63,969 nucleotides of DNA from Octopus bimaculoides (lineage: Eukaryota). The DNA is taken from the NCBI RefSeq assembly GCF_001194135.2, contig NC_068987.1:13631646-13695614 (forward strand), in the 5' to 3' direction. Under the pieces are notes generated by a model. The model was given only the letters and a program-made list of their open reading frames with translations, did not search any database and was not told where the DNA came from. This document shows, one piece after another, positions 29,981-54,619 of this stretch. A program made the translations under genes and the position numbers. Every line of letters begins with the position of its first letter. Within the stretch, counting starts at the first letter, position 1.

Positions 29981-30257
29981 AGTGCCACTGGACTGGCTCC
30001 CGCGCAGGTGGCACATAAAATACACCATTTTGAGCGTGGCCATTGCCAGTACCGCCTGACTGGCCTTCGTACCGGTGGCACGTAAAAGCACCCACTACAC
30101 TCTCGGAGTGGTTGGCGTTAGGAAGGGCATCCAGCTGTAGAAACTCTGACAAATCAGATTGGAGCCTGGTGTAGCCATCTGGTTCACCAGTCCTCAGTCA
30201 AATCGTCCAACCCATGCTAGCATGGAAAGCGGACGTTAAACAATGATGATGATGATG
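29981..30257 (+). mobile_element. SINE family B (RTE-type tail ending in (GAT)n), 5'-truncated, young
   Basis: GGCACGTAAAAGCACC...GTTGGCGTTAGGAAGGGCATCCAGCTGTAG...CCAACCCATGCTAGCATGGAAAGCGGACGTTAAAC(A/G)ATGATGAT; CpGs retained. Confidence 0.85.
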
Positions 30258-30831
30258 TACATTTGAGATTGTTGCACAAAAGATAAAAAGTGGATTTCAT
30301 CTCTTACACAAATTCTTCCTTGGTTAAGGCATATCGAAATTTTGCCTAAGAAACGAAATTCCCTTTTTATCTTTTGCACAATTATCTGAAACCTGCATAT
30401 TAAATGCATTGAAAATATTCCTACTTGGTTTAACACCATTATCATATACATTATATGACAACAATACAAACTAACCAGCCCTAACTCCATTCATACTGGT
30501 ACTGTAACTAGGATTTGGAGTGGTGTGTTCTTTTTGATTTGAGTTGGAAATTCTGGTAATATGAATAGCTTCTAAGCATCTGTTTGTTATTCCCTCACCT
30601 GTCTCAATCTTTTGTTTTCTATATATTTGAACCATATCTATAGATGTTAAACATCTCATGTATTTGTCTCTATTTTCCATTATCCTTATGTTCTCCAAAA
30701 CACATCTCACTTCTCCTTGGAATTATCACCATGCAAGTGTGAATACTAATTTCTTAGGCACTTATGTGACATTTGGCTACCCTGTAACTGTTCCTCTGGA
30801 TCTTTCCTAGTAAACTGAACATATATATATA

Positions 30832-30981
30832 TGGTTGGCGTTAGGAAGGGCATCCAGCTGTAGAAACTCTGCCAAATTAGATTGGAGCCTGGTGTTGCCA
30901 TCCGGTTTCACCAGTCCTCAATCAAATCGCCCAACCCATGCTAGCATGGAAAGCGGACGTTAAACGACGACGATGATGATG
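30832..30981 (+). mobile_element. SINE family B 3' fragment inserted in (TA)n
   Basis: Near-identical to 30111-30257; (TA)n on both sides. Confidence 0.85.
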
Positions 30982-31219
30982 ATATATATATATGAATATT
31001 TCCTTTTAGTTTTGTAAGTAAAAGGAACAAATTTTATTTTCATAAAAAAAAAAAAAATCATTAATTAGACAACACATATTTCACAGGTATTGCTTGAAAT
31101 GATTTTCCGAAATTGTTTAACTGTTCCAGTTTCACAATGCAGACATGTCACAGCTTTCAATATCATAACATAGTGTTAACTATTTATTGAGCACATTGTG
31201 TTATAATTCCTCAGATCAG

Positions 31220-31237
31220 ATCTGGATATGTTGCGTT

Positions 31238-31310
<73 letters not shown>
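31220..31310. repeat. (TG)n microsatellite
   Basis: Directly visible. Confidence 0.95.
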
Positions 31311-31320
<10 letters not shown>

Positions 31321-32274
31321 TGAGAAAGAGGAGGTGGATAGAGGAAGAGTGGGAGTGAGTGAAACACCTCTTTTAAACATGTATTATAAACATAACCCAT
31401 ATTCTAGTTATCTTTTCTATCAACATTTCTTTCATATCCATTTAAATGAGTTCCAACTATTTTGTTGAAATTTAGGAAACTATTTTCCTAAATTAATCAT
31501 CAATGTTTCTAAGACTGTCATAGTCTCATCTTCAGGATGAAGTGAAATTGGTGACTGTTGCTGCCTCTAGGCAGGTCTAAGGTAATTTGTGCAAACAAAA
31601 TGATTAGCATTTATATTTTGTTAGATTTGAGTCCATAGTCAAGTGTTGTTTATTTTGGTTTGTGAAACAGTGCATCTTGCCTATGATCTCCACCTACCAT
31701 AGCATTTTGTTGGCTGTGTTATGAACATTACTTCCATCACAAAACATCTAGTTTTGTGGAGGGATTCTGTAGAGCATCAAGTTGTTATCTACTAATGTTT
31801 TCCTCTGCTGTGTAGTAAATACATTACAATTGCTCTTTGTAAGTCTACGGTGAACTGACAGGAGGCAGTCATTACTTGTATGACCAACATTATCAGTTGC
31901 AGTTGTGAGGTTTACAGTTGAATTCATAAACCACATTGAGCACTCGCATCTTATCTGCAACTTAACAAGTTTGTGTTTTATTATTAATTTATATATATAG
32001 TATAGATAAGATTCAATATTTTTGTAGTATATTATTACCGTGTGGGGGCGGGGGTGGACAAGCAGCATCAAAGCATTTATAAATAAGTTAGACATGTATA
32101 ATTAAGCAGAAAGATAGTCTATGGTAGTCCTTCTCAAATATATAGATGTCCAGAGGTTTAAGGAATAGGAAATATTACCTACTTCCTTTCTGCATAATTA
32201 TGTATTTATATGCTTATTTGTATAACATATCTATAAATGCCTCTCCACGTTTTATTTTATCTTTACTTTTGTTA

Positions 32275-32560
32275 GCTCAACCACGTGGTTCCAGGTTCAG
32301 TCTTATCGCTTAGTACCATGGGCAAGTGTCTTCCGCTATAGCCCCCAGCCAAACAAAGCCTTGTGGATGGATTTGGTAGACAGAAACTGAAAGAAACCTG
32401 TTACATACGTGCATGTTTGTGTGTGTGTGTGTGTACATGTCTTTGTGTCTGTGTTTGTCTCATACCACTGTTTGACAGCTGGTGTTGGTGTGTTTACATC
32501 CCTGTAACTTAGCAGTTCAGCAAAAGAGATCCAATAGAGTAAGTACCAGGCTTCAAAAAA
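32275..32560 (+). mobile_element. SINE family A, 5'-truncated
   Basis: GGTTCAGTC...GGGCAAGTGTCTTC...GGATTTGGTAGACAGAAACTGAAAGAA...GTAAGTACCAGGCTT. Confidence 0.8.
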
Positions 32561-34389
32561 AGCCCCCAAAAAATTACAGAAACCAGCAAAAAATAAATGG
32601 GTGTGTGCATGTGCATTGATTCACACATCCATTTCTTTCCAGGCATGCATGGATTAATGACTATTATTAAAGCAATGTTTTACATATGCACACACACACA
32701 CACACATTACACACACATACAACACATACAACACACACAAGTCGACACGGATGTCAATTAGATAAATTACAGCAGCTTGTCAGTAATGCTGCATTTCGTG
32801 GCCATGATCAACAGCTGAGTCCACTTGGATGTAAATAGCTCAAATGTTAAGTTGCAGCGACACTGTGGGATTGCAATACCCAAGAACTTCTAGAAAAAAG
32901 CTGTCTACAATGGATCGGTCTCACATTAGCTTAAATGCTATGGGAACCAGGAATACGAGCCAGCATCACGTATCCATGTGATTTGGAAAGAGTAGGGATA
33001 AGGATGTAACAACACTAATTGTGGCTCTACATAATTTAGTACTGTGTAAACAGCTAATTATTGCATGTAGTGTTTAAAGTAACTACTCTATAATGTATGC
33101 AATTGATTTCGATGCTACAACTAACTGCCCGGGAAAAATAAATAAATAAATAAATAACAACAAGAAAAGCAACTATCAACTTTTCAGGTTACATAATTTA
33201 TCAATATAACATGATATGAAGAGATGGTAAATGGCAAAAAGCAAAAAAAGAAAAAAGAATGTAATAACCTGTATATAAAAAAATATCACAATCATATCAA
33301 GGTCCCCCTCCCCACAAACACAAGAATAATACAATGTTGGAAGCATTAGGCTTTCCTGAAAAGGAATCTAATTGACAATAAGGTCTGGGTTTTTTTTNNN
33401 NNNNNNNNNNNNNNNNNNNNNNNNNNNNNNNNNNNNNNNNNNNNNNNNNNNNNNNNNNNNNNNNNNNNNNNNNNNNNNNNNNNNNNNNNNNNNNNNNNNN
33501 NNNNNNNNNNNNNNNNNNNNNNNNNNNNNNNNNNNNNNNNNNNNNNNNNNNNNNNNNNNNNNNNNNNNNNNNNNNNNNNNNNNNNNNNNNNNNNNNNNNN
33601 NNNNNNNNNNNNNNNNNNNNNNNNNNNNNNNNNNNNNNNNNNNNNNNNNNNNNNNNNNNNNNNNNNNNNNNNNNNNNNNNNNNNNNNNNNNNNNNNNNNN
33701 NNNNNNNNNNNNNNNNNNNNNNNNNNNNNNNNNNNNNNNNNNNNNNNNNNNNNNNNNNNNNNNNNNNNNNNNNNNNNNNNNNNNNNNNNNNNNNNNNNNN
33801 NNNNNNNNNNNNNNNNNNNNNNNNNNNNNNNNNNNNNNNNNNNNNNNNNNNNNNNNNNNNNNNNNNNNNNNNNNNNNNNNNNNNNNNNNNNNNNNNNNNN
33901 NNNNNNNNNNNNNNNNNNNNNNNNNNNNNNNNNNNNNNNNNNNNNNNNNNNNNNNNNNNNNNNNNNNNNNNNNNNNNNNNNNNNNNNNNNNNNNNNNNNN
34001 NNNNNNNNNNNNNNNNNNNNNNNNNNNNNNNNNNNNNNNNNNNNNNNNNNNNNNNNNNNNNNNNNNNNNNNNNNNNNNNNNNNNNNNNNNNNNNNNNNNN
34101 NNNNNNNNNNNNNNNNNNNNNNNNNNNNNNNNNNNNNNNNNNNNNNNNNNNNNNNNNNNNNNNNNNNNNNNNNNNNNNNNNNNNNNNNNNNNNNNNNNNN
34201 NNNNNNNNTTTTTTTTTTTTTTTTTTTTAATGAATTAAAGCATCTAAAAAATCCCTGAAACATAGAAACTCTGTCTCTAAGATATGAGCATTTATCATTT
34301 CACTGTAGACTCAATTGTTGAAATAGTCACAAAAAAGCTTGCAACAACTGTTTCTCACAAAAGTATTGGGTAAAGAAGGTAACATTTCA

Positions 34390-34612
34390 TAAGCTTTCAA
34401 CATTCAGATTACTGTCTAATATGATGCTTATTTATTCACATTGTTTTGCATTAATCGTACATTATCTTGAAACTTTAAAGACAATGATGTGAGAGCTTAT
34501 TTTTAGACTGACATTGTAAGATAGATCTGAGAGGCCTGGTTTGACAAGTTTGAACATAAAACAGGTAGAATATTTGGGCCTCATATGTTCAATTTAAATG
34601 CTAAAGAGTTAA
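34390..34612. mobile_element. TTAA-flanked MITE family 1, inverted copy
   Basis: Ends AAATGCTAAAGAG|TTAA. The internal GAACATAAAACAGGTAGAATATTT is the reverse complement of the 23284 copy's AATATTCTGCCTGTTTTAAGTTC. Confidence 0.6.
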
Positions 34613-35583
34613 ACATATACAACTATATTCTTAATGGTAATATAGTAATGATAAACAGAATAACTGTAAATCACTGCAGAAAAAGTATTTTGAAGAAATA
34701 ATCTTAGATTTGAAAACCAATAGAATTAATTAAAAGAATTGGCCAATATTTATTGCTTCCATGTAAAACAGCAATTACATGAAAAAATGTAAAATAATTT
34801 TCACAATTGTAAAAGTTTCAAATGTGAACAAAAATGACATTATTCGAAACATTTCTCTAACAAACAGGCTATGGGTTTGTCCTCTTTCAAAAGCACTATA
34901 AAATATATATATATATATAATTAAAAACAAATCAAAAGATTATTGTGTACAATTAGGTCATCAGTTATAATAACGTCCGTCTATTAGACAAATCAATTAG
35001 TAAAATGAAGACAATGTAGATACAATAAGCCAAATATATTAGAGAAACTTAATGATTATCAGTTGTTTTGGTTAGAGATTATTAGAAACAAAGTCATTAG
35101 ATATGTAAAAAATGTTTCTATGTGAAGAATTTACAAAATATGGCTAGCAACCAATAAGTGCTTCTATAGCAAATATCATCTTTCCTAAAGAAATAATGCT
35201 GCCTGAAGATAAAACCAACCTACAGTAATGATATAATAACAAAGTGAGTAAAAGTGCATATTTGCTCCTTGGTTACAGATATGATCTGTCAGGTTACAAC
35301 TGAATATAGCTACTCCTACGATTATGACCAAAGTGAGTCGAGATTAGCAAGTTCTCACACACATACACACAAGTTTTACACTGTATAACCTGCTAAAACT
35401 TAAGAAAGAGATGATAACCATCAGCCAAAGAATAAATGTAAGAACAAAGAAATGATTGATTACAGCTAGCAAAGAAACCAGCCCGAAATTCTGTATTTAG
35501 AGAGGTGGTACTCAGTCTTTTGATGCTCGGGGCTTACTTTAACCAAAAGGCATTTTACAAATGCTCCCTCCATATGTATTATA

Positions 35584-35977
35584 TACTCTCTTTACTTTTA
35601 CTTTTTTCAGTCATTTGACTGTGGCCATGCTGGAGCACCGCCTTTAGTCGAGCAAATCGACCCCAGGACTTATTCTTTGTAAGCCTAGTACTTATCCTAT
35701 CGGTCTCTTTTGTCAAACCACTAAGTTACGGGGACGTAAACACACAAGCATCGGTTGTCAAGCGATGGTGGGGGGGACAAACACAGACACACAAACACAA
35801 ACACACATATATACATATATACGACAGGCTTCTTTCAGTTTCCGTCTACCAAATCCACTCACAAGGCTTTGGTCAGCTCGAGGCTATAGTAGAAGACACT
35901 TGCCCAAGGTGCCACACAGTGGGACTGAACCAAGAACCATGTGGCTGGTAAGCAAGCTACTTACCACACAGCCACTC
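35584..35977 (-). mobile_element. tRNA-derived SINE family A (CORE-like segment, internal CA/TG microsatellite), well-preserved copy
   Basis: Reverse complement begins GAGTGGCTGTGTGGTAAG (A-box-like), GGTTCAGTCCC (B-box-like), CACCTTGGGCAAGTG (CORE-like); tail GCAGTCAAATGACTGAAACAAGTAAAAG-like. Many homologous copies in the window. Confidence 0.9.
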
Positions 35978-38900
35978 AAATAAAAATAAATAAAAACTGA
36001 TTATTTTAATCAAACAGAAGCTAATTTTGTATATTAGTTATTACCTATATTTTCTTAATAGATTCCAATCAGCATGTGGCTCCCTTCAGATATTTGTATG
36101 GATTTATGCCCCACTGCATTAAACTTTTATGAAAATACTAAAGAAGGTGATGATTGACATAATGAAATTACAGTGGAATGTTCAAGCATCAGTAGTCATG
36201 CTTCTGCTCACTGATAATGCAATGCCTTTCTTGTATTTTAATCCTGACAAAGATTTTTTTTTTTTTTCAAAATTTTATATAGAATACAACTATTGTATCT
36301 GGTTGAAATATTTTATTTCAAAGAAAAGTGTTGACCCTTCTAAAATACCCGTGTCTTCCCATAGCCCTCCTTGACAGTTGAATGCCCCTTTGTATGCTAA
36401 CACTACCTTAGTTAAGAACCACGTTCGACAAAATTTTAGAAGAGAGGAAAAAATAAGAATCACAAGAAAAGTACAGATGACATATCAGTAGTTTCCAAGA
36501 AAATGCTTACAGCAATTTCACAATATGTTATAGAACTAACTTAAATCACAGGGCAATTTTTAACAAAATCAAGGGGTTCGGTTCACAAGTATTTAATCAC
36601 AATTAGAATTATTAAAGTAATGTACTCAAGTCATTTGTGAAATGCTAATGTCCTACCTACACTTATTCCAAAGGTCAAGATTATCCAGCAGCCATGTTGT
36701 GAATGGTACCTGAGCTAAAGAAAAGGACTGTTTCTATTTTGTTCTATTCCAACTCTATTGAAAATACAATGCTAACATCTGATCACAACTGGACAAAGCA
36801 TTTTACATTTTTAATCTGAATATTATTATTATTATTAATTTTTTTCTCTTTCTCTTTTTTCTTTTCAGGAACGTAAAATATCAAATGATATTTATGGTCT
36901 GAAAATATCAATATGCTTAATGATTACTTGTTTGTTTGTATTTTTTTAATTTTTAATTACTTAGAGCAAGGGTGTGCAGCAGTACACATAGTCTTTGTAT
37001 ACATACTCAGACTGTTGAGTTCTATGGGGTCGGTGCCCATAGGAAAAATGTAAGGGAGAAAGAAGTGGGTTCTTGAACATTGTATTTTTAAGTAGGAAGA
37101 TTGAGTAACTAAAAGAATGATATATGAGATTTTTGTATATTATCTTTCGCTGTAGCATCTATGTAATTAGTAATAAAAAAATTTTTTTTAACCAGCAACA
37201 TAATTTCATTTGCACTCATGTCAGAGAGAAAATGGCAATTTATATCTTAAGATAAAATAAACTTTAGCTAATATAATCAAGTTGTTTTTATGTGAGTGTG
37301 TCTGTGTGTGGTGGTGGTGGTGGTGGTGGTGGTCTAGAGTTCTACATTCAGTATAACTGTTTTCTTTATAGAAGTGACAAAAACAGCCAAATACAAAAGG
37401 CAACAATATTTGCCAGAAACTGAGAACAAAAGCATAAAGATAAAAAATGGTGGCAGATAGCTTTTTGTTCTTTTTCTTCTTATCTCATAGTCAGGAGAGA
37501 GGAGGTGGAACCCATGGCTTTTACACAGCCTCCAAGACTAGTACAAGAGAGAAAGGAAGGTATGNNNNNNNNNNNNNNNNNNNNNNNNNNNNNNNNNNNN
37601 NNNNNNNNNNNNNNNNNNNNNNNNNNNNNNNNNNNNNNNNNNNNNNNNNNNNNNNNNNNNNNNNNNNNNNNNNNNNNNNNNNNNNNNNNNNNNNNNNNNN
37701 NNNNNNNNNNNNNNNNNNNNNNNNNNNNNNNNNNNNNNNNNNNNNNNNNNNNNNNNNNNNNNNNNNNNNNNNNNNNNNNNNNNNNNNNNNNNNNNNNNNN
37801 NNNNNNNNNNNNNNNNNNNNNNNNNNNNNNNNNNNNNNNNNNNNNNNNNNNNNNNNNNNNNNNNNNNNNNNNNNNNNNNNNNNNNNNNNNNNNNNNNNNN
37901 NNNNNNNNNNNNNNNNNNNNNNNNNNNNNNNNNNNNNNNNNNNNNNNNNNNNNNNNNNNNNNNNNNNNNNNNNNNNNNNNNNNNNNNNNNNNNNNNNNNN
38001 NNNNNNNNNNNNNNNNNNNNNNNNNNNNNNNNNNNNNNNNNNNNNNNNNNNNNNNNNNNNNNNNNNNNGTGTGTGTGTGTGTGTGTGTGTGTGTACGTGC
38101 ATGCATGCATGCATGCATGTCCCAGTACTGCTTGACAAACAGGTTGGTGTGTTTATGCCCCCATAACTTAGTGGTTCAACAAAAGAGACTGGTAAAATAA
38201 GTACCAGGCTTCAAAAATAAGTACTGGGGTTGATTTGTTTGACTAAAATTCTTCAGTGCCCCAGCTTGGCCACAATCTAATGATTAAAACAAGTAAAAGA
38301 TAATCTACCACTCTGGACTGGTATGGTTTCTTATATTGACTTCAATGAATAATGACAAGATAGAAGGAAAAGTTGACCTCAAACATGATTTGATCTCAAG
38401 AGTACAGAGAACTGGAACAAATACCACAAGGTATTCTGATGCACCAACAACTCTGCCAATTCACCACCCTAGATAAAACTGATAAAAGCTGGAACTCTTG
38501 TATACTTAGATAAGACATTTTCTTCTATATAAAACCTGGCAATCGTTCTGTATAAACATTTACAACTTGATTTTCCCACAAAGTACAAAAGACAAAAAAA
38601 AAAAAGATTAAAATTTGCTAAAATCAGCTCATTTTGCTTGGCAATTGGCTTTATCATACTTAATTGCAGAGACAGAATTATTAAAAATCGTAATTAACCT
38701 ACACCAAAAAAAAAAAGGAAATTACTAAAAGATATTTAATTATACATTTAATTTTGATAAAAGCTACTTAAAATATATGTTCATGGNNNNNNNNNNNNNN
38801 NNNNNNNNNNNNNNNNNNNNNNNNNNNNNNNNNNNNNNNNNNNNNNNNNNNNNNNNNNNNNNNNNNNNNNNNNNNNNNNNNNNNNNNNNNNNNNNNNNNN

Positions 38901-39221
38901 NNNNNNNNNNNNNNNNNNNNNNNNNNNNNNNNNNNNNNNNNNNNNNNNNNNNNNNNNNNNNNNNNATAATGGGTAACAGAGGACAAACAAGAGAAAGGGT
39001 GAGAGGAAAGAGATAGAAAGGAAAGAGAAGAAAACAAGATATTATCATCATTTAATGTCCACTATTCCATGCTTGCAAGGGTCAGATGGAATTTGTTGCC
39101 AACCCTCACCAGTTTCCAAGCCCATAGTTAGACATGTTCTTACAGAAAACTGAAAATAAATGACATCAATTGGATGATGAAGATTCTTCTTTATAATCAC
39201 ATGATGTCTAGACGGTGGCTG

Positions 39222-39259
39222 GCGCGCGCGCGCGCGCGCGCGCGCGCACACACACACAC

Positions 39260-39299
<40 letters not shown>

Positions 39300-39303
39300 C
39301 CTC
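39222..39303. repeat. Compound (GC)13-(AC)n-(CT)n microsatellite
   Basis: Directly visible; adjoins a minus-strand family A SINE head at about 39320-39470. Confidence 0.95.
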
Positions 39304-40095
39304 TCGCAACACTCACACAAACACACAAAAAGCTTCTTTCAGCTTCTGTCTAGCAAATCTACTCACAAGGTTTTGGGCACCCTGAGACTGAGAGTGCCAC
39401 ACAGTGGGACTGAACCCAAGACCACATGCATGGGAAGAAAGCTTCTTAACCACACAGCAACATCTGTGACATGACACACAAAAAGTAAAGAGAAATGAAG
39501 CTAGAAAGGAACAAAAACAAGAAAGTGAGACGCACTGAACAAAACAGAGAGGTGGGGTGGGAGGGTAGTCCAGAATATTTGCAGACAGTTGGCTAATTCT
39601 AAATGAGACTGTTGAAACGGAGACAACAGGTGCATATTTGAATCTAAGATTAATACAAGGACATAAATGTCAGACAGACACCAAACTAAGAAGAAGCCAG
39701 ACTACTCAATGTCATGTTCTGTAAGAATTTAACTTCACTAAATGATACATCATCATCATCATTCACTGTCCACTTTCCTTGCAAGGAACAGAGGACAAAA
39801 ATTACTGAGGCAGATTTTCTCCATCTAGATGCCGCCCTTCCTGTCATCAACCCTTACCTGTTTCCAAGTAAGGTGATATCTCCTTAAGGCCAGACATGTA
39901 CTCACAGGTTACTGAAAATGAATGAAACCACTTACATGACAGTGGCACTCATTTACAACCATCACATAATGTCAAGATCATGCGTGCACACACACAACAG
40001 GGTTCTTTCAATTTCTGCATACCAAATCCAGTTACAAGGCTTTGGTGGGCCTGAACCCATAATTATGAGGTTAGGAAACTCTCTCTCTCTCTCTC

Positions 40096-40153
<58 letters not shown>

Positions 40154-41266
40154 AGCTGACTATAATAATCAGTAAAAACTACCACCTCAACACAAAATGT
40201 GTGATTTGCATCATAAGTGAAATAGGAGTTTATGATGTTGGTATCTTTTTTTAATGGTATGCGTTTAATGTGTAATTAATGTGATTTCAAATTGCTTCCA
40301 ATGAAAACTGAAATTGGGTGGCAAACTCTTTTTATCAAGAACTTTGCTTGACAGTAAGAAAAAAAAAAAATTATCACTTTTATTTTAATCTTTAATTTAA
40401 TGTTATTTATATCAAAGATCAAAGTAGAAAATTAATCCCAGTTTTTTTTCATTATTTCTATCAATTGTCGCTAATTAAGCAATTTAGCACACATTTAACG
40501 CACTTTATGGAGAATATTGAATGAATTTTCAAATCCAAATGAATAAAATTACTTCTGATAAGAAATTTATCACAACTAATGCAAAGAACCAAAATAATAA
40601 TAATAATAATAATAATAATAATCCTTTCTTCTATAAGCACAAGGCCTGAAATTTTAGGGAGGGGCTTAGTCAATTACATCAACTCCAGTGCTCAACTGGT
40701 TACTTTTTTCATCAATCCTGAAAGATGAAAGGCAAAGTTGACTTTAAAGACAGGTAAAATGTCACTAAGCATTTTGTCTGGCATGCTAATGATTCAGCCA
40801 GCTCACTACCTTAATAATAATAATAATAATTGTCTGATATAGGCACAAGGCCTGAAATTTGGGGATGTGTTTTTACACACTGATTCTATTAAATACAGTT
40901 AAGAATCGAAAGTTTTGGTTTCTGATTACTATATGAAATCAGAAGAATCTGTTGAAGAATGGTTAACCTTAGTGACATTATAAGAGAGCAAAATGAATTT
41001 TAAGAACCACAACATTCTCAAGAAAATTTCGAAACCTCAACAACCAAGAATCAAAACTGTTTCACTGACTTTTCTTGCCAAGAACCCATCTCTAAACCAC
41101 AATGCTTACCATTTTATATTATTTTATTCCTTTACTCATGCTTGCAAGAGAACTACTTTTAAGGGTTTAGTCAATAATACTGTATTTTAGACGAGAACTT
41201 ATCGATTTCTAACTGCTAAGTGACAGGACATAAAAGTTCATAACATAACCACAAACAAAAGCATGA

Positions 41267-41297
<31 letters not shown>

Positions 41298-43004
41298 ACA
41301 CTCATAAAGCAGTGATCGATCAAAGGCTAGAATAACCCTAAGTATCAGGCAGTGGTATTGAACATGGAACCTCATGACTGTGAAGCAAACTTAACCAAAT
41401 AGCTATGCTGCCATCTGAATAAATACTTCAAGACATATGTGTACAAGTGTCAACAGAATCAGTTATGCATGCAAACATATCTACATGTGCCCAGTTAAAT
41501 TTACAAATTAGAGTTTATCAATAAATTTCCGTTGAATATTTTATAGCTACTTGACAGAAAAGATGAAAGACATAGAGGGAGTTAAGTGTCCTAAATATTT
41601 CAACATTTAATTTTTATGTTCTATCAAATTTGTTTATGTTGATTCCAGAAATGTGCAAATAACTTCCATCCAACAAATTGCCAGGCTAAGTATGTTAATA
41701 GAGACGCAATTACCAGCCTAATGTAGCTGCAATATTCATGAAGATTGTAACTTCAATGTAGATTCGTAAATTCAAACATTACTAGTGTTTAGTCAGAACA
41801 TAGAACCATTTATGGAGTCACTGGTGTTGCATGGAACATTTTCTGGGGATAAAACTGAAATTTATTTGGCTTGAGATTTCTATTTTGCCTCACAGTCATA
41901 TATAAAACACCTTCCACTAATCTATAAAATCAAAAATGAATCATAGAGGATTGAATAAGGAAACAGGTTTATCAGAGAGGCTGGCAATACACATTGTATT
42001 ACCAATACTACACGGTGTCTGAGATGATTAACTCTTAACGATCGAGTTCATTAGGTCGGAAGAGCAAGTGATATAGTTCACTGTGGTTTGCAGTAGCCGC
42101 ATAGTGAAATGAACAAGTGAATTATCAAACTTGCAGTGCTGGATTCAGTTCTAGTCAAGCAAAAGGTGGCCTGTTATTTTCCCATCCAGATAGGAGTAAT
42201 TCATTTCTAGAATACTTGATACTAAAGGTAAGCATCAACTCTGGGAGTACTAATAACTTAGGAGTGTATCTGGTGCCAAAGAGATGGTTGAGACAATTTA
42301 CACACGGAAAGCAGGTACTAGTGAATTAAAAGCCCAGACTTACACAATTAAAATATAATTTCTAACAGAGGTAATAATTCACTACCCCAGCCATTAAAAA
42401 AAAAAAAAGTAGAGAACATCACTTCAGGAATTGAACTGTGATCATGATAACAATAATATACCAAGATGACTTGATGGACAACTAAACAATAATAATGGTT
42501 TCAAATTTTGGCACAAGGCCAGCAGTTTTTTAGGGTATTGGGGAATTGATTACATCAACCCTAGAACTCAACAGGTACTTATTTCATTGACTCCAAAATG
42601 ATGAAAGGAAAAGCCAATCTTAGCAGAATTTGAGTTCAGAATGTAAAGATGGACGAAATACCAATAAACACTTTGTCTAGCATGTTAATAGTTCCACCAG
42701 CTTGCCATCTTCAACTAAACCATAACAACAACAATCTGGCTTCTATAGTCAACATTATGAATCTAATCCTCATTTTTGTTGTTGTTGCTTAAGTTACTAG
42801 TTACTGTTTAATAAGATTATTACTGTTGCTATTGTGTAATTTTTCCCACTGAATAATAGGCAGGTAAAAGAGTATTAAGTCATTTATTGCTTATAAGAAC
42901 TTGTTTGATTTATTAGCCAATGTAATTAGTAATTATATTTCTTGTAGTATGTATACTGTTTATATTAGTCAGACTAGTGTTATCATTTTGATCGTTGCTT
43001 TCAT

Positions 43005-43045
43005 TACATTTTGGCTGTTGTATGCTCCAGCCTTCTTCAGGTGTC
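43005..43045 (-). ncRNA. Degenerate hammerhead-ribozyme-like motif (Penelope-like element type)
   Basis: Minus strand reads CTGAAGA-A-GGCTG-GAGCATACAA-CAGCC-AAAATG. The perfect 5-bp stem II is present; the expected CCGAAACG is seen as CCAAAATG, i.e. two CpG-type transitions. Confidence 0.4.
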
Positions 43046-44439
43046 ATATGTTGAACTTGGTTGTTGTATTGGAATTTTAAACTTAACCCTTTATTCAATC
43101 TCCAAGGAGGCACACATTTCTCATGCAGCTCTCTGTGTTTCGTAGTAGATAAAGACATTGGTTAATGCAGTGCAATCACATAGGAGGTTCTGAGTTCAAT
43201 CCCAGACCAGGAACTAAGGTAATTCACAGAAATCAACTGAAGCAAAACATGTCATGAGATGCAGAGAGCAAAATGAGAACAGTGTACCCTTGTGGATCAA
43301 ATAAAGGGTTAAGTTTGAAATTCCGGTACAACAACCAAGTTCAACACAAGACATCCAAAGAAGGTATTTTATAAACATTTCTATATAATAACCCAATTAC
43401 GATATGATCAACAATCAACAATGAGGATTATAATTTGACAAATGATCAATCTCCTTTCCCAAAGTGCTAAGTTACAACACTAGTTGTCATGTGGCTGCAG
43501 GTGACAAATACACATACACACATGCATGCATGCATGCATGCATGTATGTATGTATGTGATAGACCTCCACACAGTTTTGTCAACCAAATTCACTCACAAG
43601 GCATTAGTTGGCCCAGGGCTAAGGTAGAAGACACTTGCCCAGATGTCACATACTGGGATTGAACCTAAAACCAAATGGTTGCAAAGAGAGCGCAAACTAA
43701 GTTTGGTCACTTAACCAGAAAATCATGACCTCTTTCTTGTTACAGCACAACATTGTATCCAGAATAAAAATTTATTTTTATTAAGTGATGTTATCCTATA
43801 ACAGAGAAAAACAGTAAAGATGGAACTGGTTTTAAATCATAGAAAAAATGTGGAAACTGGTGAATCACTTAGTTTTTTACAATGCTGAGCTTTGAATGCA
43901 TTCACAAAAATAAAATTTAAAAAAGAAAATTTTAAAAAGTAAATAGCTACTTATATAAAAAAAATATACATCAAAAACATATTCTTTTGCAGAAATAATA
44001 CTATTGTCATCGACAATAGAAGAAATTTGACTTTTCTTGCTATTACCAATTCTAGTTACTAAGCAACTACTGACTTTTAAACCAGACTTGTTCAGGTCAC
44101 CTAGATAACATAGCTTAGTTAATATTTAATGACTTATTACTGCAATCCATTTTCTTCATGTCCAGACTTTATGCACTGTCAATTTTGCATTAATGAACTT
44201 AGTGCACAAGCAAGCCAAGTTCACTGTCAGATGCCCTTAGTGTCAACATAGTAACACTGTCTGAATTATAATCTATCCTTCACACTCAAAGGCTGAACTA
44301 GTTAACTGCTGCTCAGTTTCTAGAGTCTGCAGACATTAGATATATTAGATAATACCATTTCAGCTTCTCTCATATTCATCTGTAATCCATTGATTCAAGC
44401 ACTTCTGTCCAGGTAAGAAACATGTGTCAGAAGAACAAA

Positions 44440-44805
44440 AACTGGTAATCATATTTTGTTTCAGTTATTAGACAGTGACTATGCTGAGGGCACCACCATG
44501 AAGAGTATTCATAGAACAAAGTGATACCAGTATTTCTTTCCCCCCCATCCCATGGTCTGGTACTTTTGCCAAACTACTAAATTACAGGGATGTAAACAAA
44601 CCAACACTAGCTGTCAAGAGGGTGTTGGCAAACACAGAAGCACATGCATACGCACACAAACAAACTTCCACAAGGTTTCTGTCGAGCAAATCCACTCACA
44701 GGCACTGGTTGGCCTGGGGCTATAGCAGAAACTTGCTCAAAGTGCCATTCAGTGGGGCTGAACCTAAAATCATATCGTTACAAACCAGGCTTCTTAACCA
44801 CACAA
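44440..44805 (-). mobile_element. SINE family A, diverged
   Basis: GGGATGTAAACAAACCAACAC...AAATCCACTCACAGGC...CTGAACCTAA...TTCTTAACCACAC. Confidence 0.75.
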
Positions 44806-45177
44806 CTTTTCTTCTTTTTACTGCTTTGGTTGTTGGATGGAAAATGATTTGGGGTTCAGGGCAGGAATGAAAAGTATGGCAGTTTAGTTTTAAATACCCC
44901 CCACCCCCACCCCAAAGTACATTTTGCTTCATGAGAAAGAGCACTGCCCCAGTTCAGGAATTGAAGAGTCAATTGGTTGGGTTAATACCCAATTTTAATT
45001 GCTCTAGGTGACAAACAAGAGAAAAAGAACAGACAAACAGAGTAAGATTTTCAATGAGATGCAATCTTTAAGAAATATTACAAAAAAAAAAGAGGGCTTA
45101 GAGGTTTGAGATATTGTGGGAAATGAGACAAAAAAAAGTGAGAGTATGAAATCAGTAGATTAGGATAGAAGGTTGGG

Positions 45178-45510
45178 CAGGCATGGCTGTGTGGCACTTT
45201 GGATGTGTCGTCTATTATAACACCTGGTCAATCAATGCTTCATGAGTGAATTTGGTAGATGGAAATCATGTGGAAACCTGCTGTGCCTATGTGCGTTTAT
45301 GTATCTGTTTCACCACCACCGTTGATTAACAATTAGTGTTGGTTTGTTTGCATCCTCATAATTTAGCAGTTTGGCAAAAGAAACAGAATAAGTAACAAAC
45401 TTTAAAACTTAGTGCTGGGAGTCAATTTTTTCGACTACACCCTTCAAGGTAGTACCCCAGCATGGCCACAGTCCTATAACTGTGGCCAAGCAAAACGTAA
45501 AAGATAAAGA
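45178..45510 (+). mobile_element. SINE family A, diverged
   Basis: GGCATGGCTGTGTGG...GAGTGAATTTGGTAGATGGAAA...CCCCAGCATGGCCACAGTCC. Confidence 0.7.
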
Positions 45511-46244
45511 TGTTTACCAACATCATTGTTGTAGCAATCACAGAAGAATTTGCCAGAACAATGGAGCAATGGTTAGAATGTGTTTGTGAATGGTGGCTTC
45601 TGATAGCAAATGACTGATATGCAAGACATTCACTTGTAAAGTGCACAAACTACTTTGAACTAAACTATTACATTATAAATACATAAGTTCAAGAAAGTGT
45701 AAGGTACAGCCAACAATTCCTGTTTCTGAATCAAGAAAATTATTACGAGTTGAAAGATGTTTGAGGTGGTAAAGATAGTTATCGTAGGGAATGCTGCCAA
45801 AGAAACAAACTGACTTCTTTTATAAGTGCTTTTATAAGTGAAAGTCTAACCAGGTAAGAATTATCAAACGTATTTCCATGGCCTACATTTCAATAATATA
45901 CAGCGTTCCTGAGGATATTTTAGCAAAGACTCTCTTCACTAATTACCTATTATCTTCAGATTCACACATAATTAAACAATATCTCCTTTCATGATCAAAC
46001 TGCCAAGCTATAAACTGATAAAAGAGTGTTCAATACCCAAAAATGCAATTTATCATGTAAATATTTTCTAAAAATTACTTTTTCACTATTATTTTGATTA
46101 AAAAATAGAAAAGCACCACCTCCCCTCCAAAAAACAACAAAAAATAATGAATAATGATTCTGTTTCATTATGAACTCAAAACCAATAGAGAAAGAGTATG
46201 TGAAGCCATGGAAACAATAGATAAAAATGCATTTTTATTTTTAT

Positions 46245-46277
<33 letters not shown>

Positions 46278-46517
46278 TNNNNNNNNNNNNNNNNNNNNNN
46301 NNNNNNNNNNNNNNNNNNNNNNNNNNNNNNNNNNNNNNNNNNNNNNNNNNNNNNNNNNNNNNNNNNNNNNNNNNNNNNNNNATATACTGATTAAAGAAAT
46401 CATTTTTATAGTAAACCAAGCTATCTTGTAAATTTTTTCATTACACAAATTAAATTATGTTAAAAATATAATCCAGCGATAAGGACAATTCATCTTTATG
46501 AGAAAATACCTCCTGTT

Positions 46518-46567
<50 letters not shown>

Positions 46568-47984
46568 ATACATATACACACGCGCAAGCGCATGTGTGTA
46601 CACATTGTATGTTCAGTTAAAAGAGTATAGCACAAAAAAGCTCCGACATGATAAGAAAGGAAATTAAATGCACTGACCAATATACTCTTGACTTCAGTAG
46701 TTAGCCTGAGGGAAAATTTTTCAGAACATTCCTAGCAAGGCTAGAATAAACATCTGGCAGCATCATAGCATGAAATTGGCAAATTAAAAGTCAAATATCA
46801 CAGGACTACCCTTTCATTTCCTAGATCAACAAGTAATCAATACATTTTAACTAGTCAAGCATAACTAGAGACAAGCTTACAGGATGTGTGATCCAATCTC
46901 ATGAAATAGATTTTAAAATGTCAGCAATGATTGCTTAAGTTAGTTTGTATTATCTTAATGGGTTTTAAATGGACTAGTTTTTATACATGCACAGAAAAGC
47001 AAAAAAAAAGAAGAAAGAAAAATAAATATTTAAGGAATTTCCACACTGTTTCTTCAAGAGATTGCCTATAATGGGAATATTTAATGTTTTATTGGTAGAT
47101 CTATTGATAATCTAAAACAAATCAAAATATCTATATTCTTTAATAAGTACAAGAGACTAAAATCTCTTCCATGAGTGATCAGAAAATTCATCATTTAAAA
47201 CATGCAAACACACACACATTTTCTAGTTTTATTAGTTTTATATAAATTTTTGTTTTTTTTAAACCTTTTTATTCCATCATCATTATTTTTACAAAGCCTT
47301 TTCTCTGCTAGCATGTGTTGGATGGGGCATCGTAGATTGAGTCAGCTCTTATTCAGATCACTGCCCTCCTAGACAGACAAGTCTGTCTCGTTCACTGGTT
47401 CCATTTTTGAATGTGCTTTTATAGCTGAATGCCCTTCCTATTGCCAACCCCTTTACAGGATGTACAGGATGCATTTTATCAGAACACCAGTACTTGAGAG
47501 ATTGTCTTGTCCTCAACAAGAGAAAAGAGTCTTTTCTTACCCAATAGGATTTCCATTTGCTCGTTTGCCAACACCAGAAGGTTGTCTTGTCCTCAGCAAA
47601 TAGAAGTGACTTTGATGTTAGACGACCAATGCAAGAATGTGATAGATGAGAGAGTAAAAGAAAAGAATCAAAGAGAGAAGTTTGAAAAGGTAACAGAGAT
47701 AAGTAGAGGGAAGAGAGTGGTGAACAGCTAGATGATAATTGTTGGTAAGGATATTCAATACAAATAGCACATTGGAGAGGAGAGAGAGAGAGGACAGGGT
47801 AATAGAAGAGAAGGTACTGTAAGTGAGAGAGAAGTGCTGGAAACAGAAAGAGAGAGAGAGCTTGGAAAGACAGTAGGCATTATAGATGTCAATAATGAGT
47901 GATAGAGGAGAGAGTAATCATCAGTTACTTTGGTGTAACCACCAGTTACTCTGGTTATCCTAGCATACCCCAGAGCTGCATCTT

Positions 47985-48182
47985 GTCTAGGCTAATTCTT
48001 TTTCTAATCAATTGTACTAGAACTGTTTCAGTAACTTTGATAACCTAGTTCATCAATTAAATGCTTCTCTAGCTAACACTCTCTAAAACATCTTTGCTCT
48101 TGTAGAAGTGGATGGTGATATTATTATGCCAGTAATTGGTGATAACACCTTCCTCTGCTACCTGACTGACTATGAGTGATGG
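47985..48182 (-). mobile_element. Second RTE RT fragment, paralogous to 49862-50062
   Basis: Shares TCTTGTCTAGGCTAATTCTTTT...GCCAGTAA...CTACCTGACTGACTA with 49862-50062, with many substitutions. Confidence 0.75.
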
Positions 48183-48573
48183 ATGTTGAGTGATGGATAG
48201 CAATAAAAAATTTGAGATAAGAGTGGAGGTGCCGGATGTCAATAATTAGTGGATAAGGGTTGGAGAAATGGGGGAGAGAGAGAGAGAGAGAGAGAAAGAA
48301 AGAGATAGTAGATGATGGCTATTGATAATGAGGGGATGGTGGTAAGTGGGAGACTGAATCAAGACAGATCCAATTAATAACATCCCTTGTTACATAGGCA
48401 GTACAATGGGGGGAGGGGGTGACAATAGGAAGATATATTAATGAGAAGGTGAGAGAACAATGGATATGAGAGTCTCAAAGCCACAAAGAAACAATATATG
48501 AAGGATTGATATGAGCATAGTAGTCAGGGGAGATCTAATTGTAGATATTAGGCATCTCATTTTCCATCTCTGA

Positions 48574-50062
48574 CATCAACCTTTTTATATCCAGTCTTCT
48601 GTGCTTGTATGTATTGAGTGAGTCCCTTTTAGTACACTGATTCATGGGCCTCTTTCCCTCCTCTCCTTCCCAAGATTCAGCTTTCTAAAATGAGTCTTCC
48701 AGAATTTATCCCATAGCCCTTCTTCTTCCACAGGTTCCATCCACAAAGAGCACTTGGCATATCATTAAACAAGTGGCATTCTCCATACATGACCATACCC
48801 ACATAGTTTTCTCTCTTTCACACTCCATCCAGTTACTCCATGTCAAGTCTTTTCTTTCACCTCATTTGTACTCCACTAACAACATTATGCATCCAGCAAA
48901 GTATGGTCACCGCATTTCTTTTCAATCTTCTCAAATCCTCCGCATTCAAGGTCCATTTTTCAGTCACACAGCATACATAAGTAGCATACAATCTGCCCTT
49001 CAATAAGAAAGAGAAATCTTTTGCTGGAAAGTAGAGGTAGCAGCTCCCTGAACTTTTTCCACTACATTTTAACTTTGGCAACTGGGCTTTTGGAACAGTT
49101 GCCTCCACTCCAAATTTGGTCATCTAGGTAACAAAATCTATCGACTACACCAGGGAACCTTCTGAACACTTGAAGGAATTCATTTCACATGAATTCTTAC
49201 TGCTAGCTACTCCCGTGCACCTGCCTCATATGAAGCCAACCTACATTCCTTGTCAGACTGCCTGTGGTCTCACAACACTTCTAATGTATCCATAGATCAA
49301 AATTGGGTATATTGTATTGAATTCCTACTTATTCTTTCTCTGCATATCAAGCATGGCCATTTCTAGTGACAGTAGGGTCCTATCATCTTCGCTAGATTTA
49401 CTGTGAAGCATCCTTTTTAAATATTGTTTCCAAGCCTGGAATTTCTTCATTAATTCTTTAAACAATTCAGCTATGGTAACTAGGTAGAGAGGTGTTTCTA
49501 AGGACAACCAATCTGAAACATCTATTGTGGCTTGAAGGACAACAGTAAACAAAGGCGGAAAAAGAACTAAGCCCTGATTAACGCCAACCTGAAAACTAAA
49601 TTCTTCATGGAACTCATTGTTAATCCTCTCTCAGCTTGATGATACCACCTTTGTACATGGCTTACAAGAAAGACACGCCACTGACCTAATAATACATGTT
49701 ACCTTAGTGACCACCAGTCTTGAGAGCACGAAGCACCGTCAAAGGACTTCTCCAGGACCACAAAAGCTAAATAGAATGGTTTATTCTAGCCAAGTACGTC
49801 TACAATTGTTGTTTCACTAAGAACATGGAATCAGTGGCACCTGTCTGGGCATTAACCTGAAATGAGTCTTGTCTAGGCTAATTCTTTTCCAAATCAGTTG
49901 TGCTATAACTTTTTTAGTAACTTTTATAACTTCATCCATCAGTTTGATGCAACCTGTCTCGCTCTAAAGCATCTCTTTTGCTCTGGTATAAGTTGATGCC
50001 AGTATTACGCCAGTAACTGGATATGACACATTCCTGTACTACCTGACTGACTACGAGTGGCT
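48574..50062 (-). mobile_element. Decayed, 5'-truncated RTE-clade LINE (RT, Cys-rich insert, C-terminus, 3' tail)
   Basis: Broken minus-strand frames: RT N-terminal YWRNTGINLYQSKRDALER; GVNQG (about 49585); ELFKELMKKFQAWKQYL; KWPCLICRERISRNSIQ; DRFCYLDD; LKGRLYATYVCCVTEKWTLNAEDLRRLKRN; GYGHVWRM...GTCGR-like. The tail near 48574-48625 resembles the GAT-tailed SINE end. Confidence 0.85.
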
Positions 50063-53000
50063 AGCACATTATCTACTTCAAATATTTTAAGTGTCTCAGT
50101 GATTATACCATCCCCAATGGCCCAGTACCTTCCCTTTCTTCATATCCTTAATTGCGCTTTTGATCAATTGGCTGTCAATTTCAATGGTTGATCCATCAAA
50201 GTTACATGATTATATTTTTCCATTTATGAAAATTATCACTGAATTCCGACTCTTAGAAATATACAATAAAAATATACATTTTTAAAAGGTTACTGACTAA
50301 CAATTAATAAAACTGTTTTTAAATGATTCATTACTTGTTTTATTCTAATAATTTTTTTTCCTCTTCTTCCATAAACTGAAACTAGTGATTGGAACATTAG
50401 GAACCATTCTCCATTTCTCCCTCCTCAACATTTTTTCTTTTTTTCTTTGACATTAAACTAACTGATGCAGCATTCAGCAACGTTTTGGTAAGGGATATTC
50501 AATACAAAGAAAGCATGTATGTCACTAGGACCATGTACCAAATATTTCAACTCAACAAACAGAGAGCAATCATCACCAAAATAAAATTTTTAACAACTTC
50601 CTCCTTTCTTTCTTTTTATTCTTTTACTGGTTTCAGGTACTGGTTTGCCTTCATGGATATAACCATTATCGCCATCCCATCATCGCTCTATAATCAACAG
50701 GTACTCATTTCACTGACCTCACAAGGTGGAAAGGCAACAGCAGCCTGACGATTTGAACCCAGAACGTAAAAAGGTATCACTATCACAAGCTATTTTCTAT
50801 GGTACTCTACAAATTCTACACTCTACCATTAATTCATTACAAATTTAATATGCTCAATCATCAGAGACATTCAAATAAGTGCTCTATTCAAGGATATCAC
50901 TTAATCCCAATATCCAAATGTTCTTAACTAAGTTCATTGAAGCAAACCAGTCCAATTCAGCCCATTAGCATGTGTGTGTGTGTGTGTGTATGTATGTACA
51001 TACGTACATGGTCATGTGTCACCCTGATCTCTAGACTCAGAGATATTAAGGTTTGCACACTTGTTACTGTTTTAAAAAGTTATCCCTGTCACTACTGAGA
51101 CCAGGGAAAAAAAAAAAAGAGAACAACCAGCCTATATTGCTTAATAAAAGAAAATATATGCCTACAAGTGGATCATTTGGAGAGAATCCAATGAACGCTA
51201 ATGTTCCAAATACCAATAACTCTTATAGATTTACTCCTCTACACAGACAGAAAGGAATAGCAGATTTAATGGAAAGCAGACTCCTGCAACTAGATCCATC
51301 TGTACTGAGATGTATAAAAGAGAACCCAATAAAAGTAGCAGCTATTTGATTTTATATATCAGCCCTGAGCAAGGAAACCTCAGATGTGCTTTTGCAACAG
51401 GATGTAGGAAGAGTACTAAAAATTTGAACTGTGCTTTGCTGTCCTCCACAAAAAAAACCCCCATTAGTGCACTCACATGCAAATGCACACATGCCAGTGT
51501 AAATGCATGTACATATGCATGCCCCCCCACACACACACACACATACGTTTATGTATACTAGTGTAATCCTTTGCCTCGAGCTGAGTCCCTCTTGGTGAAA
51601 AGGTGACTTATTCGTTTTTGATTAATAAAAATCATTAGGACTGAAATTAATACTGGGATCAACACAATTGATTAGTGAAGGTGGTGCCCCAACAGGGCTG
51701 CATTTTCTGCATGAAATGCAATAAAAGAATAAGGAAAAGAATAGACACATATACATACATGCACACAAACATAAACCAGACACATATAAAGACATATAGC
51801 TCGATAGACACAGTTTGTGGGTATTAAAAGGCAAGAGAATGTTTTAGGAGCTCATTTCCAAAATAGAACAGTATTCTTGTGCATTTAGCTTCGTTGATTT
51901 ATTATTTATCAACTGTCATTAGTCTATTCCTCAGAGGAATACACTCATCAACACACAACTCACTGCTAAAATGACACCTTGGAGTTCTTTCCTTCTTTTC
52001 ATTTTATATTAGTAATGATATGCAGTCAGTTTATTTGGCAGGAAATTTTTTTTTTTTTTTTCCTTTAGAGGAGCACACTAGTCTGGCATTAGCAAATGCC
52101 TAATGAAACAGGGTTAATGGTCACAAGTCATTGCAATTCTCATCTTCCTGAGAAACCCTCTGAGCATTTGGGACCTGCAAAAGAATAGCTACCAAATCCC
52201 CCTCAAATCACACACCCTATCTTTAAAAGGAAGGATATGGTAAACGTATTATGTCTGAAGATGGAAAAAAAAACAAGATGGGATGGTCATGGTAAGATTG
52301 TCATTGATTGTAAGTCTACTTAGTCGGAGCTGACTTGGCTTTTTTTGAAATTATATCTACACTTGTTCTCTAAATACATTAAGAAAGTAAATTTGCTTTT
52401 CAACAAGTTGATGTTGCAGAACAGTTTAGCCATCAACCTATCAACATTTTGATTTTCAGCAGAGCTATAACAATATCAACTGGTGCCCATCTTTACAAAT
52501 TCAAACCCATGGTCTTTATCTTAAAATAGTTTAAGAAGTTGTCTAAACTAATGAAATCCTGCATGCCGCATATAACTGATTAAAGAAATGATTTACGAAT
52601 AACTATGAGTAATACTTTGAATAAATATCTCATTCAGGAGAAGGAGGTGACAGAATTAGAAAATGAAAGTGAATACTTCTCAAGAGAAAAATAGCTTTCA
52701 GAACAATGGAATATAAACCACATTTTCAACTGGATTTCTGATCTATATAATAACTATTTCAACAATACATCTGAATGATAATGGAAAATGAAAAGCTAAA
52801 AACTACCCAATCCATAAATTTTATATGACTACATCAGCTCAGACCATATCCAACTATAAGCATACACAGAGATTATCTCACCAAATTTAACATGAAACCA
52901 TTTTTGGAATTTTTTAAACAAAATATACCAGATTAGAAAGGAAAAAAAAAGTTAAGGGAATTTTTTTCCTGTTTCTCAGCAGTTATTGTTTTAACTATAA

Positions 53001-53295
53001 AGAATAAATATTTCAATAGAAAACTAATTTTGCTTAATACATACAAAATATAACAGAAAAAGGAGAAAAAAGTTGCTGTTTTCCCCCCTAATTATTAGTA
53101 AATGTTTTAGCTATAAAGACTAAATATTTCATTAGCAAACTAATTTTCTTCACAAGTAAAATACTATTGTGATGTTAATTATATACAAATTAGCAACTAG
53201 TAAAAAGTACCTCTAACTAAGAAAATTGCTTTATTATACTTTCAAAACAATTTTTTTTTTTTTTTTTTTTTTTTTTGTCCATGTTAAAAACTTAC

Positions 53296-53403
53296 CTGAA
53301 CAAAATACTTGAGATGTTTTATATCATTATTCTTCAATCTTGACACAACATGATCAATCCCCCGCAAATTAACGTCTAAGTGTAGATTAAATCCGTTAGC
53401 CAT
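53296..53403 (-). CDS. Candidate alternative first coding exon of liprin-alpha: MANGFNLHLDVNLRGIDHVVSRLKNNDIKHLKYFVQ
   Basis: ATG at 53403, 36 open codons, consensus donor CAG|GTAAGT in phase 0 matching the 27564 acceptor. In-frame TAA at 53470-53472 upstream with no intervening in-frame ATG. Four CpGs in about 45 nt. No homology recognised. Confidence 0.55.
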
Positions 53404-54619
53404 CGAGTCAGATGACAACAAATATATACATATACATATATATATATATATGTATATATATATATTTATTTATATACAAACATAAAATATTAATGATCTC
53501 AAAAATATCTACTTTGACTTTCTTTAATGCCAAAAATTACACTTTTTGGCATTCTCTCCTTTAAAAAAATACTTTATATTCAAAGTTTCTGTGGTGTATT
53601 TTGGTTTGGTGGATGTATGTATGTGTAGGTATTATATATGTATATATAGATATATATATGGGTATGTGTGTATATATACTCATACAATGGTAGTATTATT
53701 TTCTTTACTCTTGCTTTTTTTTTACTTAGACAAAGTAAAAATAGACTAAAATATATATATATAAAAAAGGGGGGAAAAAAAAAGAAAGATAAAGTAAACC
53801 ACACAAGAGAAACTAAACTGCAAGGTGATGGGGTAATGAATGAAAAGATAAATTTATATCCAGAGGTTGCAGAATAAAGAGGTAAATCCACTCCAATGGT
53901 AGATATCCATGGAAAAAAGAGGTATCCATTAGTTTAATCCATGGTAGTAAATGTGAAATGTTCATCAGCTTGGAAGTAACTTTACACAGCCTCATTGTAG
54001 CCAAATAGTAACACATGGCTACAAACAATTGCATCCACTGCTGAAGAATGGTTATGGCTAATTACAGCTTAATGTTTGCAGACACTGGTGGGGGGTAAAA
54101 GAAAGGGGGGAACAAAAAAAATGAAAATGAATTGAATTGCTTCACAATTTACAAAGCTTTCACCACTGATTAGACACACAAGCTGCTGTTACTGTTGCTA
54201 CCATCCCAAAGTATCCATCATATGTATGCATCAAAAACCAATATATTTTATCCTTAGTGATTCTGATAGGTTGACAACACTGTGGTTACCAAAAGATGAA
54301 GCATGCTGATTACGTTCACATCACTATCTGCAATAGAAGCTACTCCAGCTGATGAAACTGGCTTGATAGTAGTAGCAGTAGGGGTGATATTAGCAGCGGC
54401 AAGATCAGCAGCAGCAGCAGCAGCAGCAGCAGAGATGCTAATGGCCATTCCTCTAATTCTGCTATTAACTTGTAACAGTAGGTAAACTGCAATACAAGAG
54501 CAGCATTGGGAAAGTTTTATGTCTTGTCTTACTAAAAACTAATGCAAGTTATAAACTGTGAACTACACAACTAACATCTATTTTTTATGTAGCAGAAGCA
54601 GAAAGAGAAAAATAAACAT

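Follow-up and report, generated by a model that had tools for sequence, protein, structure and literature searches.

The DNA analysed here, hereafter the window, is a stretch of 63,969 nucleotides from Octopus bimaculoides (NC_068987.1, positions 13,631,646 to 13,695,614), and its minus strand carries exons 2 and 3 of liprin-alpha together with a 36-codon frame, here called exon 1b, which probably serves as an alternative first coding exon of the same gene. The features are as follows, with a slash marking the boundary between exon and intron:

9065..9229, minus strand: liprin-alpha exon 3, ending ...LDEK/gtaagt, phase 0 at both ends
27463..27564, minus strand: liprin-alpha exon 2, EFATITKEL...ERNNTR/gtaagt, phase 0 at both ends, containing the start of helix H2
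27565..53289, minus strand: remainder of the putative intron from exon 1b to exon 2, corresponding by analogy with a scorpion gene to the 3' portion of intron 1 of the canonical transcript
53290..53295, minus strand: 5' splice donor GTAAGT of exon 1b, its GT at the identical codon position in 5/5 orthologues
53296..53403, minus strand: exon 1b, probable alternative first coding exon of liprin-alpha, assigned from its sequence, its orthologues, a profile and dN/dS
53404..54500, minus strand: presumed 5'UTR and promoter of exon 1b, AT-rich, with a TA microsatellite adjoining the ATG

Exons 2 and 3 align to helices H2 (7D2H, E=5e-27) and H3 (7D2E) of liprin-alpha2, and in a protein search they also match over 1,200 fragments of liprin-alpha. 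The acceptor context of exon 2 is ttcttgcattttcag, directly followed by GAA TTT, and the first position of the exon is 27564, in phase 0. Neither a motif scan of the window nor tblastn at E<=10 revealed a canonical exon 1 of the MPTISE type; canonical exon 1 should therefore lie beyond position 63969, which places exon 1b inside intron 1. Exon 4 is likewise absent from the window. Congeneric octopus contigs that carry exon 2 (P0154, L002-L006) show about 81% nucleotide identity overall, with one synonymous change in exon 2. The scaffold is of draft quality, with 13 assembly gaps in the window amounting to 3,501 N (for example 9329-10051 and 33398-34208) and many CA/GT and TA microsatellites; the gap at 9329-10051 sits 100 nt upstream of exon 3.

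As the initial annotation had described, the minus-strand frame 53403..53296 consists of an ATG and 35 further codons, is translated as MANGFNLHLDVNLRGIDHVVSRLKNNDIKHLKYFVQ, and ends in phase 0 at CAG/GTAAGT. The phase match with the EFATITKEL exon 25.7 kb downstream, noted at the same time, also stands, since exon 2 starts in phase 0 at 27564, and the proposed intron between the two exons, donor included (27565-53295), measures 25,731 nt. On the 5' side the ATG is preceded by 22 open codons, mostly a stop-free TA microsatellite, and then by a stop, in agreement with the in-frame stop reported 23 codons upstream. The closest upstream AG was also found where it had been placed, at 53499-53498, 94 nt from the ATG and with a short T-run, and an exon opening there would measure 202 nt. 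The coding part of exon 1b is single-copy in the window, window-wide matches being confined to the poly-A run and the TA repeat on its flanks; with the coding part free of any other match in the window, a repeat origin of the exon was ruled out. The window is strongly depleted in CpG (observed/expected ratio, o/e, 0.25), and 4/4 CpGs of the interval 52900-53900 lie within the opening 40 nt of exon 1b (53364-53405), in codons of conserved residues, a cluster that fits coding constraint, local hypomethylation or both.

The pattern of an ORF with a donor is by itself not above chance. A phase-0 ORF that starts with ATG and has 36 codons or more precedes 4 of the 14 minus-strand GTAAGT sites in the window, the four cases being exon 2, exon 3, exon 1b and one junk ORF whose donor lies at 23574. 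This junk ORF (23575-23688, minus strand) is an ATG frame of 38 codons with a phase-0 GTAAGT donor, located in microsatellite-rich sequence; it served as an internal negative control, and no homologue of it was found. What raises exon 1b above chance is its conservation across species, not its anatomy.

A counterpart of exon 1b was found in the gastropod Batillaria attramentaria (L008) at 6322-6429, where MANGFNVHLDFRLRGLDYVVARLKRSDDQSLRKFVQ is followed directly by GTATGT, on the liprin-alpha strand and 3.6 kb upstream of exon 2. It was detected with a small profile of the octopus and scorpion N-termini, run over the six-frame ORFs of fetched loci. The Batillaria gene model P0038 (from 10001) opens at exon 2 (ELATVTKEL), both first exons having been missed. 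When the octopus ORF was compared by HMMER with all 1.84 billion representative proteins, exactly two matches were returned, P0240 and P0241, both of them unspliced genomic ORFs from Logan assemblies; P0240 (L010) reads MANGFNIHLELRLRGLDYVVSYLKGKNGDRRLRYFVQ before GTGAGG, and P0241 (L011) reads MANGFNVHLELRLRGLDYIVNHLKRSDERNLRKFVQ before GTATGA. L010 and L011 are short invertebrate contigs that end before liprin-alpha exon 2, and L011 is nearest to the Batillaria exon, with 79% nucleotide identity. Neither this search nor a word-indexed one yielded an orthologous ORF from a congeneric octopus. The word-indexed search, with the 45-aa octopus ORF, gave no candidate orthologue at all, a JGI metagenome scan with the exon profile gave no match, and comparison of the 36-mer with Pfam gave no family match.

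The mollusc-type exon thus defined comprises 36-37 codons with the consensus MANGFN.HL..LRGLDY.V..LK....L..FVQ and a phase-0 GT donor. When the scorpion exon described below is included, the five orthologues are all ATG-started, are 33-37 codons long and have a GT donor right after the final Q codon, and the residues M1, N3, G4, F5, G15, L23, K24, L31, F34 and Q36 are common to all five. With a profile made from the three non-octopus mollusc-type sequences, the octopus exon was the best of 2,778 window ORFs (E=9e-18), the next reaching E~2. When the DNA of Batillaria, L010 and L011 is aligned, the conserved stretch runs from the ATG to the GT, and on either side of it the sequences are unalignable. 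The initial annotation had proposed a dN/dS test among cephalopods; here the Nei-Gojobori method was applied to the exons of Batillaria and L011, the two closest orthologues: 13 synonymous differences at 24.3 sites and 10 non-synonymous differences at 83.7 sites correspond to dN/dS=0.14, with differences at the three codon positions numbering 5/4/14. An excess at third positions is seen in all six pairs, and in the deep pairs pN is 0.2-0.33, with synonymous sites saturated. Taken together, the match to the octopus-free profile, the exon-limited conservation, the dN/dS value, the single copy and the CpG cluster indicate a translated exon under purifying selection.

A related exon is already joined to liprin-alpha in the annotation of the scorpion Centruroides sculpturatus. 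The NCBI entry 'liprin-alpha-3-like isoform X2' (P0002), which is a computational (Gnomon) prediction and not a described isoform, begins with MATNGFDLRRYGMENLQNLLKTHGSQCLHHFLQ, joined to EFATLTKEL of exon 2. In the scorpion locus (L001), canonical exon 1 (MWNMMCDVMPTISE...) occupies 10001-10249, the X2 exon 64944-65042, and exon 2 starts at 79195; this puts the X2 exon, with the donor CAG/GTGAGT, within intron 1, 55 kb downstream of exon 1 and 14 kb before exon 2 begins. The same locus contains duplicated blocks (69927-70100 versus 85449-85622, and 91736-91834 versus 101492-101662) that include a partial second copy of exon 3, reflecting either tandem duplication or an assembly artefact. When the hypothetical spliced product (the 36-mer plus exons 2-3) was used as query, the more than 1,200 liprin-alpha fragments were returned, and nearly all of their non-canonical N-termini were intron read-through of prokaryote-style gene calls (...LLFILQ/EF), scorpion X2 being the exception. 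Among proteins of 46-219 aa, searched with 125-aa and 70-aa queries, there was no spliced fragment with a mollusc-type exon 1b N-terminus.

The scorpion and octopus peptides share about 34% identity with a 4-residue gap (p~7e-4 to 2e-3 against shuffles), and a local HMMER profile of the mollusc-type sequences does not recover the scorpion exon in the scorpion locus. The homology rests on an anchored global alignment to the octopus-free profile and on genomic position. In this alignment the scorpion peptide scores 41, as compared with -9.8 +/- 7.9 and a maximum of 29 for 5,000 shuffles in which M was kept first and Q last, so that 0/5000 reach 41. The exon also ranks first of 505 ATG.../GT pseudo-exons on both strands of the 119-kb locus, the next best scoring 2.7, and among about 1,500 pseudo-exons of control loci the maximum score is 16, belonging to a mariner transposase fragment. 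On account of these scores and of the identical genomic position, phase and termini, the homology of the scorpion and mollusc exons, judged from sequence, is well supported, and it would place the origin of the exon before the mollusc-chelicerate split. Scorpion X2 differs from X1 (P0018) in the manner proposed for octopus: it has its own ATG in intron 1, an MA(T)NGF start and an L..F[LV]Q phase-0 end, and its exon replaces the exon bearing MPTISE and H1 and is spliced to EFAT[LI]TKEL. The scorpion exon has 33 codons and GC-rich surroundings, whereas the octopus exon has 36 and lies in AT-rich DNA. The statement in the initial annotation that the peptide was not recognised from other liprins no longer holds, given that the exon is present in the liprin-alpha genes of a gastropod and a scorpion.

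The consequence of such an exon swap for the protein can be read against the known structure of the liprin-alpha N-terminus. It has been reported that an N-terminal MxxIxE short linear motif (SLiM) of liprin-alpha1 binds the B56 subunits of PP2A (PMC9519923) and that the B56 interaction modulates liprin-alpha1 phase separation (PMC12273559). The first coiled coil, CC1, consists of the helices H1, H2 and H3, and self-assembly into dimers and tetramers is driven by H2 and H3 (PMC8044993). The crystallised H2 construct 7D2H starts with (S)EFAALTKEL, that is, at residue 1 of exon 2, from which it follows that canonical exon 1, or exon 1a, is a 'SLiM + H1' module, exactly what exon 1b would replace. 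By analogy with the scorpion annotation, an octopus transcript starting at or upstream of exon 1b would be spliced from CAG/GTAAGT, in phase 0, to exon 2. The 36 residues of exon 1b (MANGFN.HL..LRG.D.VV.RLK..D...L..FVQ) would then substitute for the approximately 83 residues of canonical exon 1, which carry the MxxIxE docking motif for PP2A-B56 and helix H1 of CC1, while the H2/H3 self-assembly core and all downstream parts would be unchanged. The isoform would accordingly be expected to lose B56 binding. It had been proposed earlier that this isoform retains the oligomerisation region but is missing the MPTISE motif and the first helix; since exon 2 and 7D2H start at the same residue, the proposal is consistent with the structures. 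In a single-sequence AF2 model of scorpion X2, residues 1-7 are disordered, residues 8-23 form a helix, and after a kink a helix from residue 25 is continuous with H2; the model has a mean pLDDT of 82, with 44-85 over the new exon, and is indicative only. In the octopus isoform, exon 1b probably lengthens helix H2 at its N-terminal end through its final ~9 residues, and its first ~7 residues are probably disordered.

On this evidence, 53403..53296 on the minus strand is taken, with a probability of roughly 85%, to be a genuine alternative 5' coding exon of octopus liprin-alpha inside canonical intron 1. The central proposal of the initial annotation, an alternative 5' coding exon that gives the protein a different N-terminus, is supported by the orthologous exons, the purifying selection and the scorpion X2 annotation. 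Its proposal of a promoter near 53.5-54.5 kb fares less well, since the octopus interval 53404-54500 has no GC or CpG signal and no promoter-like composition. In the scorpion, GC content peaks at 0.66 just upstream of the exon, within a block of high GC content that spans at least 4 kb, the mean of the locus being 0.37, and in Batillaria the CpG o/e rises from about 0.5 to about 1.0 over the exon; both patterns fit a nearby transcription start, and by analogy with these two species octopus exon 1b may have a separate promoter beside it. About 850 nt upstream of the octopus ATG, at 54254-54448 on the minus strand, there is a (GCT)n repeat with a poly-Ala ORF (MAISISAAAAAAAADLAAAN...), where GC reaches a local maximum of 0.445.

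Alternatively, exon 1b could encode the N-terminus as proposed but follow one or more non-coding 5' exons, possibly from the canonical promoter and mutually exclusive with exon 1a, in which case there would be no promoter at 53.5-54.5 kb. The octopus composition agrees with such an arrangement, as does the AG at 53499-53498 with its short T-run, and Batillaria and L011 share TTCCGT..TAG 15-30 nt 5' of the ATG, which could be an acceptor. This arrangement is nevertheless considered unlikely, for the scorpion GC peak of 0.66 and the Batillaria CpG o/e of ~1.0 are typical of a transcription start, and in L010 the stretch from the T-tract to the ATG is devoid of AG. The encoded N-terminus is identical whether exon 1b has its own promoter or is preceded by an upstream exon.

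It is very unlikely that exon 1b instead opens a small gene of its own, nested within intron 1 of liprin-alpha. Such a gene would be compatible with the fact that no mollusc yielded a spliced transcript and that contigs L010 and L011 stop short of exon 2, but the NCBI scorpion model joins the exon to exon 2, the octopus, gastropod and scorpion exons agree in strand and in a phase-0 end that matches the exon 2 start, the AF2 helix is unbroken across the junction, and the position in intron 1 is kept across phyla. Hardly tenable is the reading of exon 1b as a regulated cassette or 'poison' exon that follows canonical exon 1 and provides no translation start; its location inside intron 1 would suit a cassette, and the upstream AG (53499-53498) would give a 202-nt exon with a stop codon, yet conservation at the protein level starts exactly at the ATG with nothing conserved upstream, the peptide is under a purifying selection that a poison exon does not need, and the scorpion annotation begins translation at the equivalent ATG. 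Finally, the possibility that a random 36-codon ATG ORF happens to abut a consensus donor in a functionless AT-rich intron, although an ORF with GTAAGT arises by chance about once per strand in the window (the junk case with donor 23574) and the stop-free TA microsatellite accounts for the 22 open codons before the ATG, is refuted by the conservation data, that is, by the same peptide, start, length, phase and donor upstream of gastropod liprin-alpha exon 2 and on two contigs, by the E-value, the dN/dS and the confinement of conservation to the exon, and by the failure of the junk control to yield any homologue.

As to the distribution of the alternative coding exon, the complete intron 1 was scanned in the ant Acromyrmex, in Nematostella and in one bird and one fish paralogue, as were the 7-10 kb preceding exon 2 in an ostracod and the moth Spodoptera; none of them gave an equivalent, all of these being weak negatives. 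The exon is therefore not universal, and in lineages where there is no match it has either been lost or become unrecognisable. Apparent matches in Nematostella were rejected as an unrelated tandem repeat on the opposite strand; the repeat encodes GLKNGFNIELDLH many times over, at about 24300-25000 on the minus strand of L009, and its match to the MANGFN.HLD start of the profile is weak and spurious. In a group of diverged liprin-like sequences from ENA/Logan (P0096, P0101, P0111, P0116 and P0120), a common N-terminus, MLEEIKNNGTLTNGHLEEVQKFPIAAE, stands directly before the equivalent of exon 2; it may represent either an exon 1 specific to that lineage or a further alternative N-terminus.

A broader reading, which is put forward tentatively and with slightly less than even confidence, is that two interchangeable N-terminal modules have existed in liprin-alpha from the protostome ancestor onwards, one consisting of MxxIxE(B56) and H1 and the other of 33-37 residues of the MANGFN type, the second probably with its own intronic promoter and either lost from or never present in insects, the sampled vertebrate paralogues and Nematostella. 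With the same reserve, the second module may be given as MANGFN.HL..LRGLDYVV..LK....L..FVQ, so far undescribed. If the two-module reading is true, the second isoform would be uncoupled from PP2A-B56 and would lack H1, it would differ in phosphorylation-controlled phase separation or in auto-inhibition, and the conserved peptide may bind a partner of its own. That the peptide has stayed conserved for hundreds of millions of years implies that it has a function in itself.

At presynaptic active zones and adhesion platforms liprin-alpha acts as a master organiser, and its N-terminus controls self-assembly, phase separation and B56 docking (PMC9519923, PMC12273559, PMC8044993). A natural isoform without the B56 motif and H1 but with the H2/H3 core would be a ready test of what both elements do, and exon 1b offers a way to ask whether neurons or other tissues tune liprin-alpha assembly by promoter choice. 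Gene models of mollusc liprin-alpha should include exon 1b. Alternative splicing of vertebrate liprin-alpha is credited to Zurner & Schoch 2009 in passages of PMC13311821 and PMC8044993. In the literature searched, 'alternative first exon' and liprin do not occur together in any paper, none describes such a liprin-alpha N-terminus, and the reviews of liprin-alpha do not mention an alternative N-terminus. The exon is already present in one NCBI computational annotation, that of scorpion X2, and is otherwise undescribed in the literature searched, and the mechanism is an ordinary one.

Alternative first exons are commonplace, and N-terminal isoforms produced from alternative promoters are found in RIM1alpha/beta and neurexin alpha/beta. 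Closer to the present gene, human PPFIA2 has several alternative first exons or transcription starts, as is proposed here for octopus liprin-alpha, and it is listed five times among the 261 tissue-specific first-exon variants of the FLJ cDNA collection (PMC2780955); among vertebrates, no MANGF-type exon was found in the complete intron 1 of the one bird and the one fish paralogue. Similarly, in the Bruchpilot isoforms (PMC3747298) an internal promoter or first exon drops one N-terminal interaction module and keeps the rest, which resembles the exchange proposed for exon 1b. Unlike octopus exon 1b, these examples from Bruchpilot, RIM1 and neurexin concern other genes that share no homology with it, and exon 1b would not merely truncate the protein but would add a conserved 36-residue peptide of its own.
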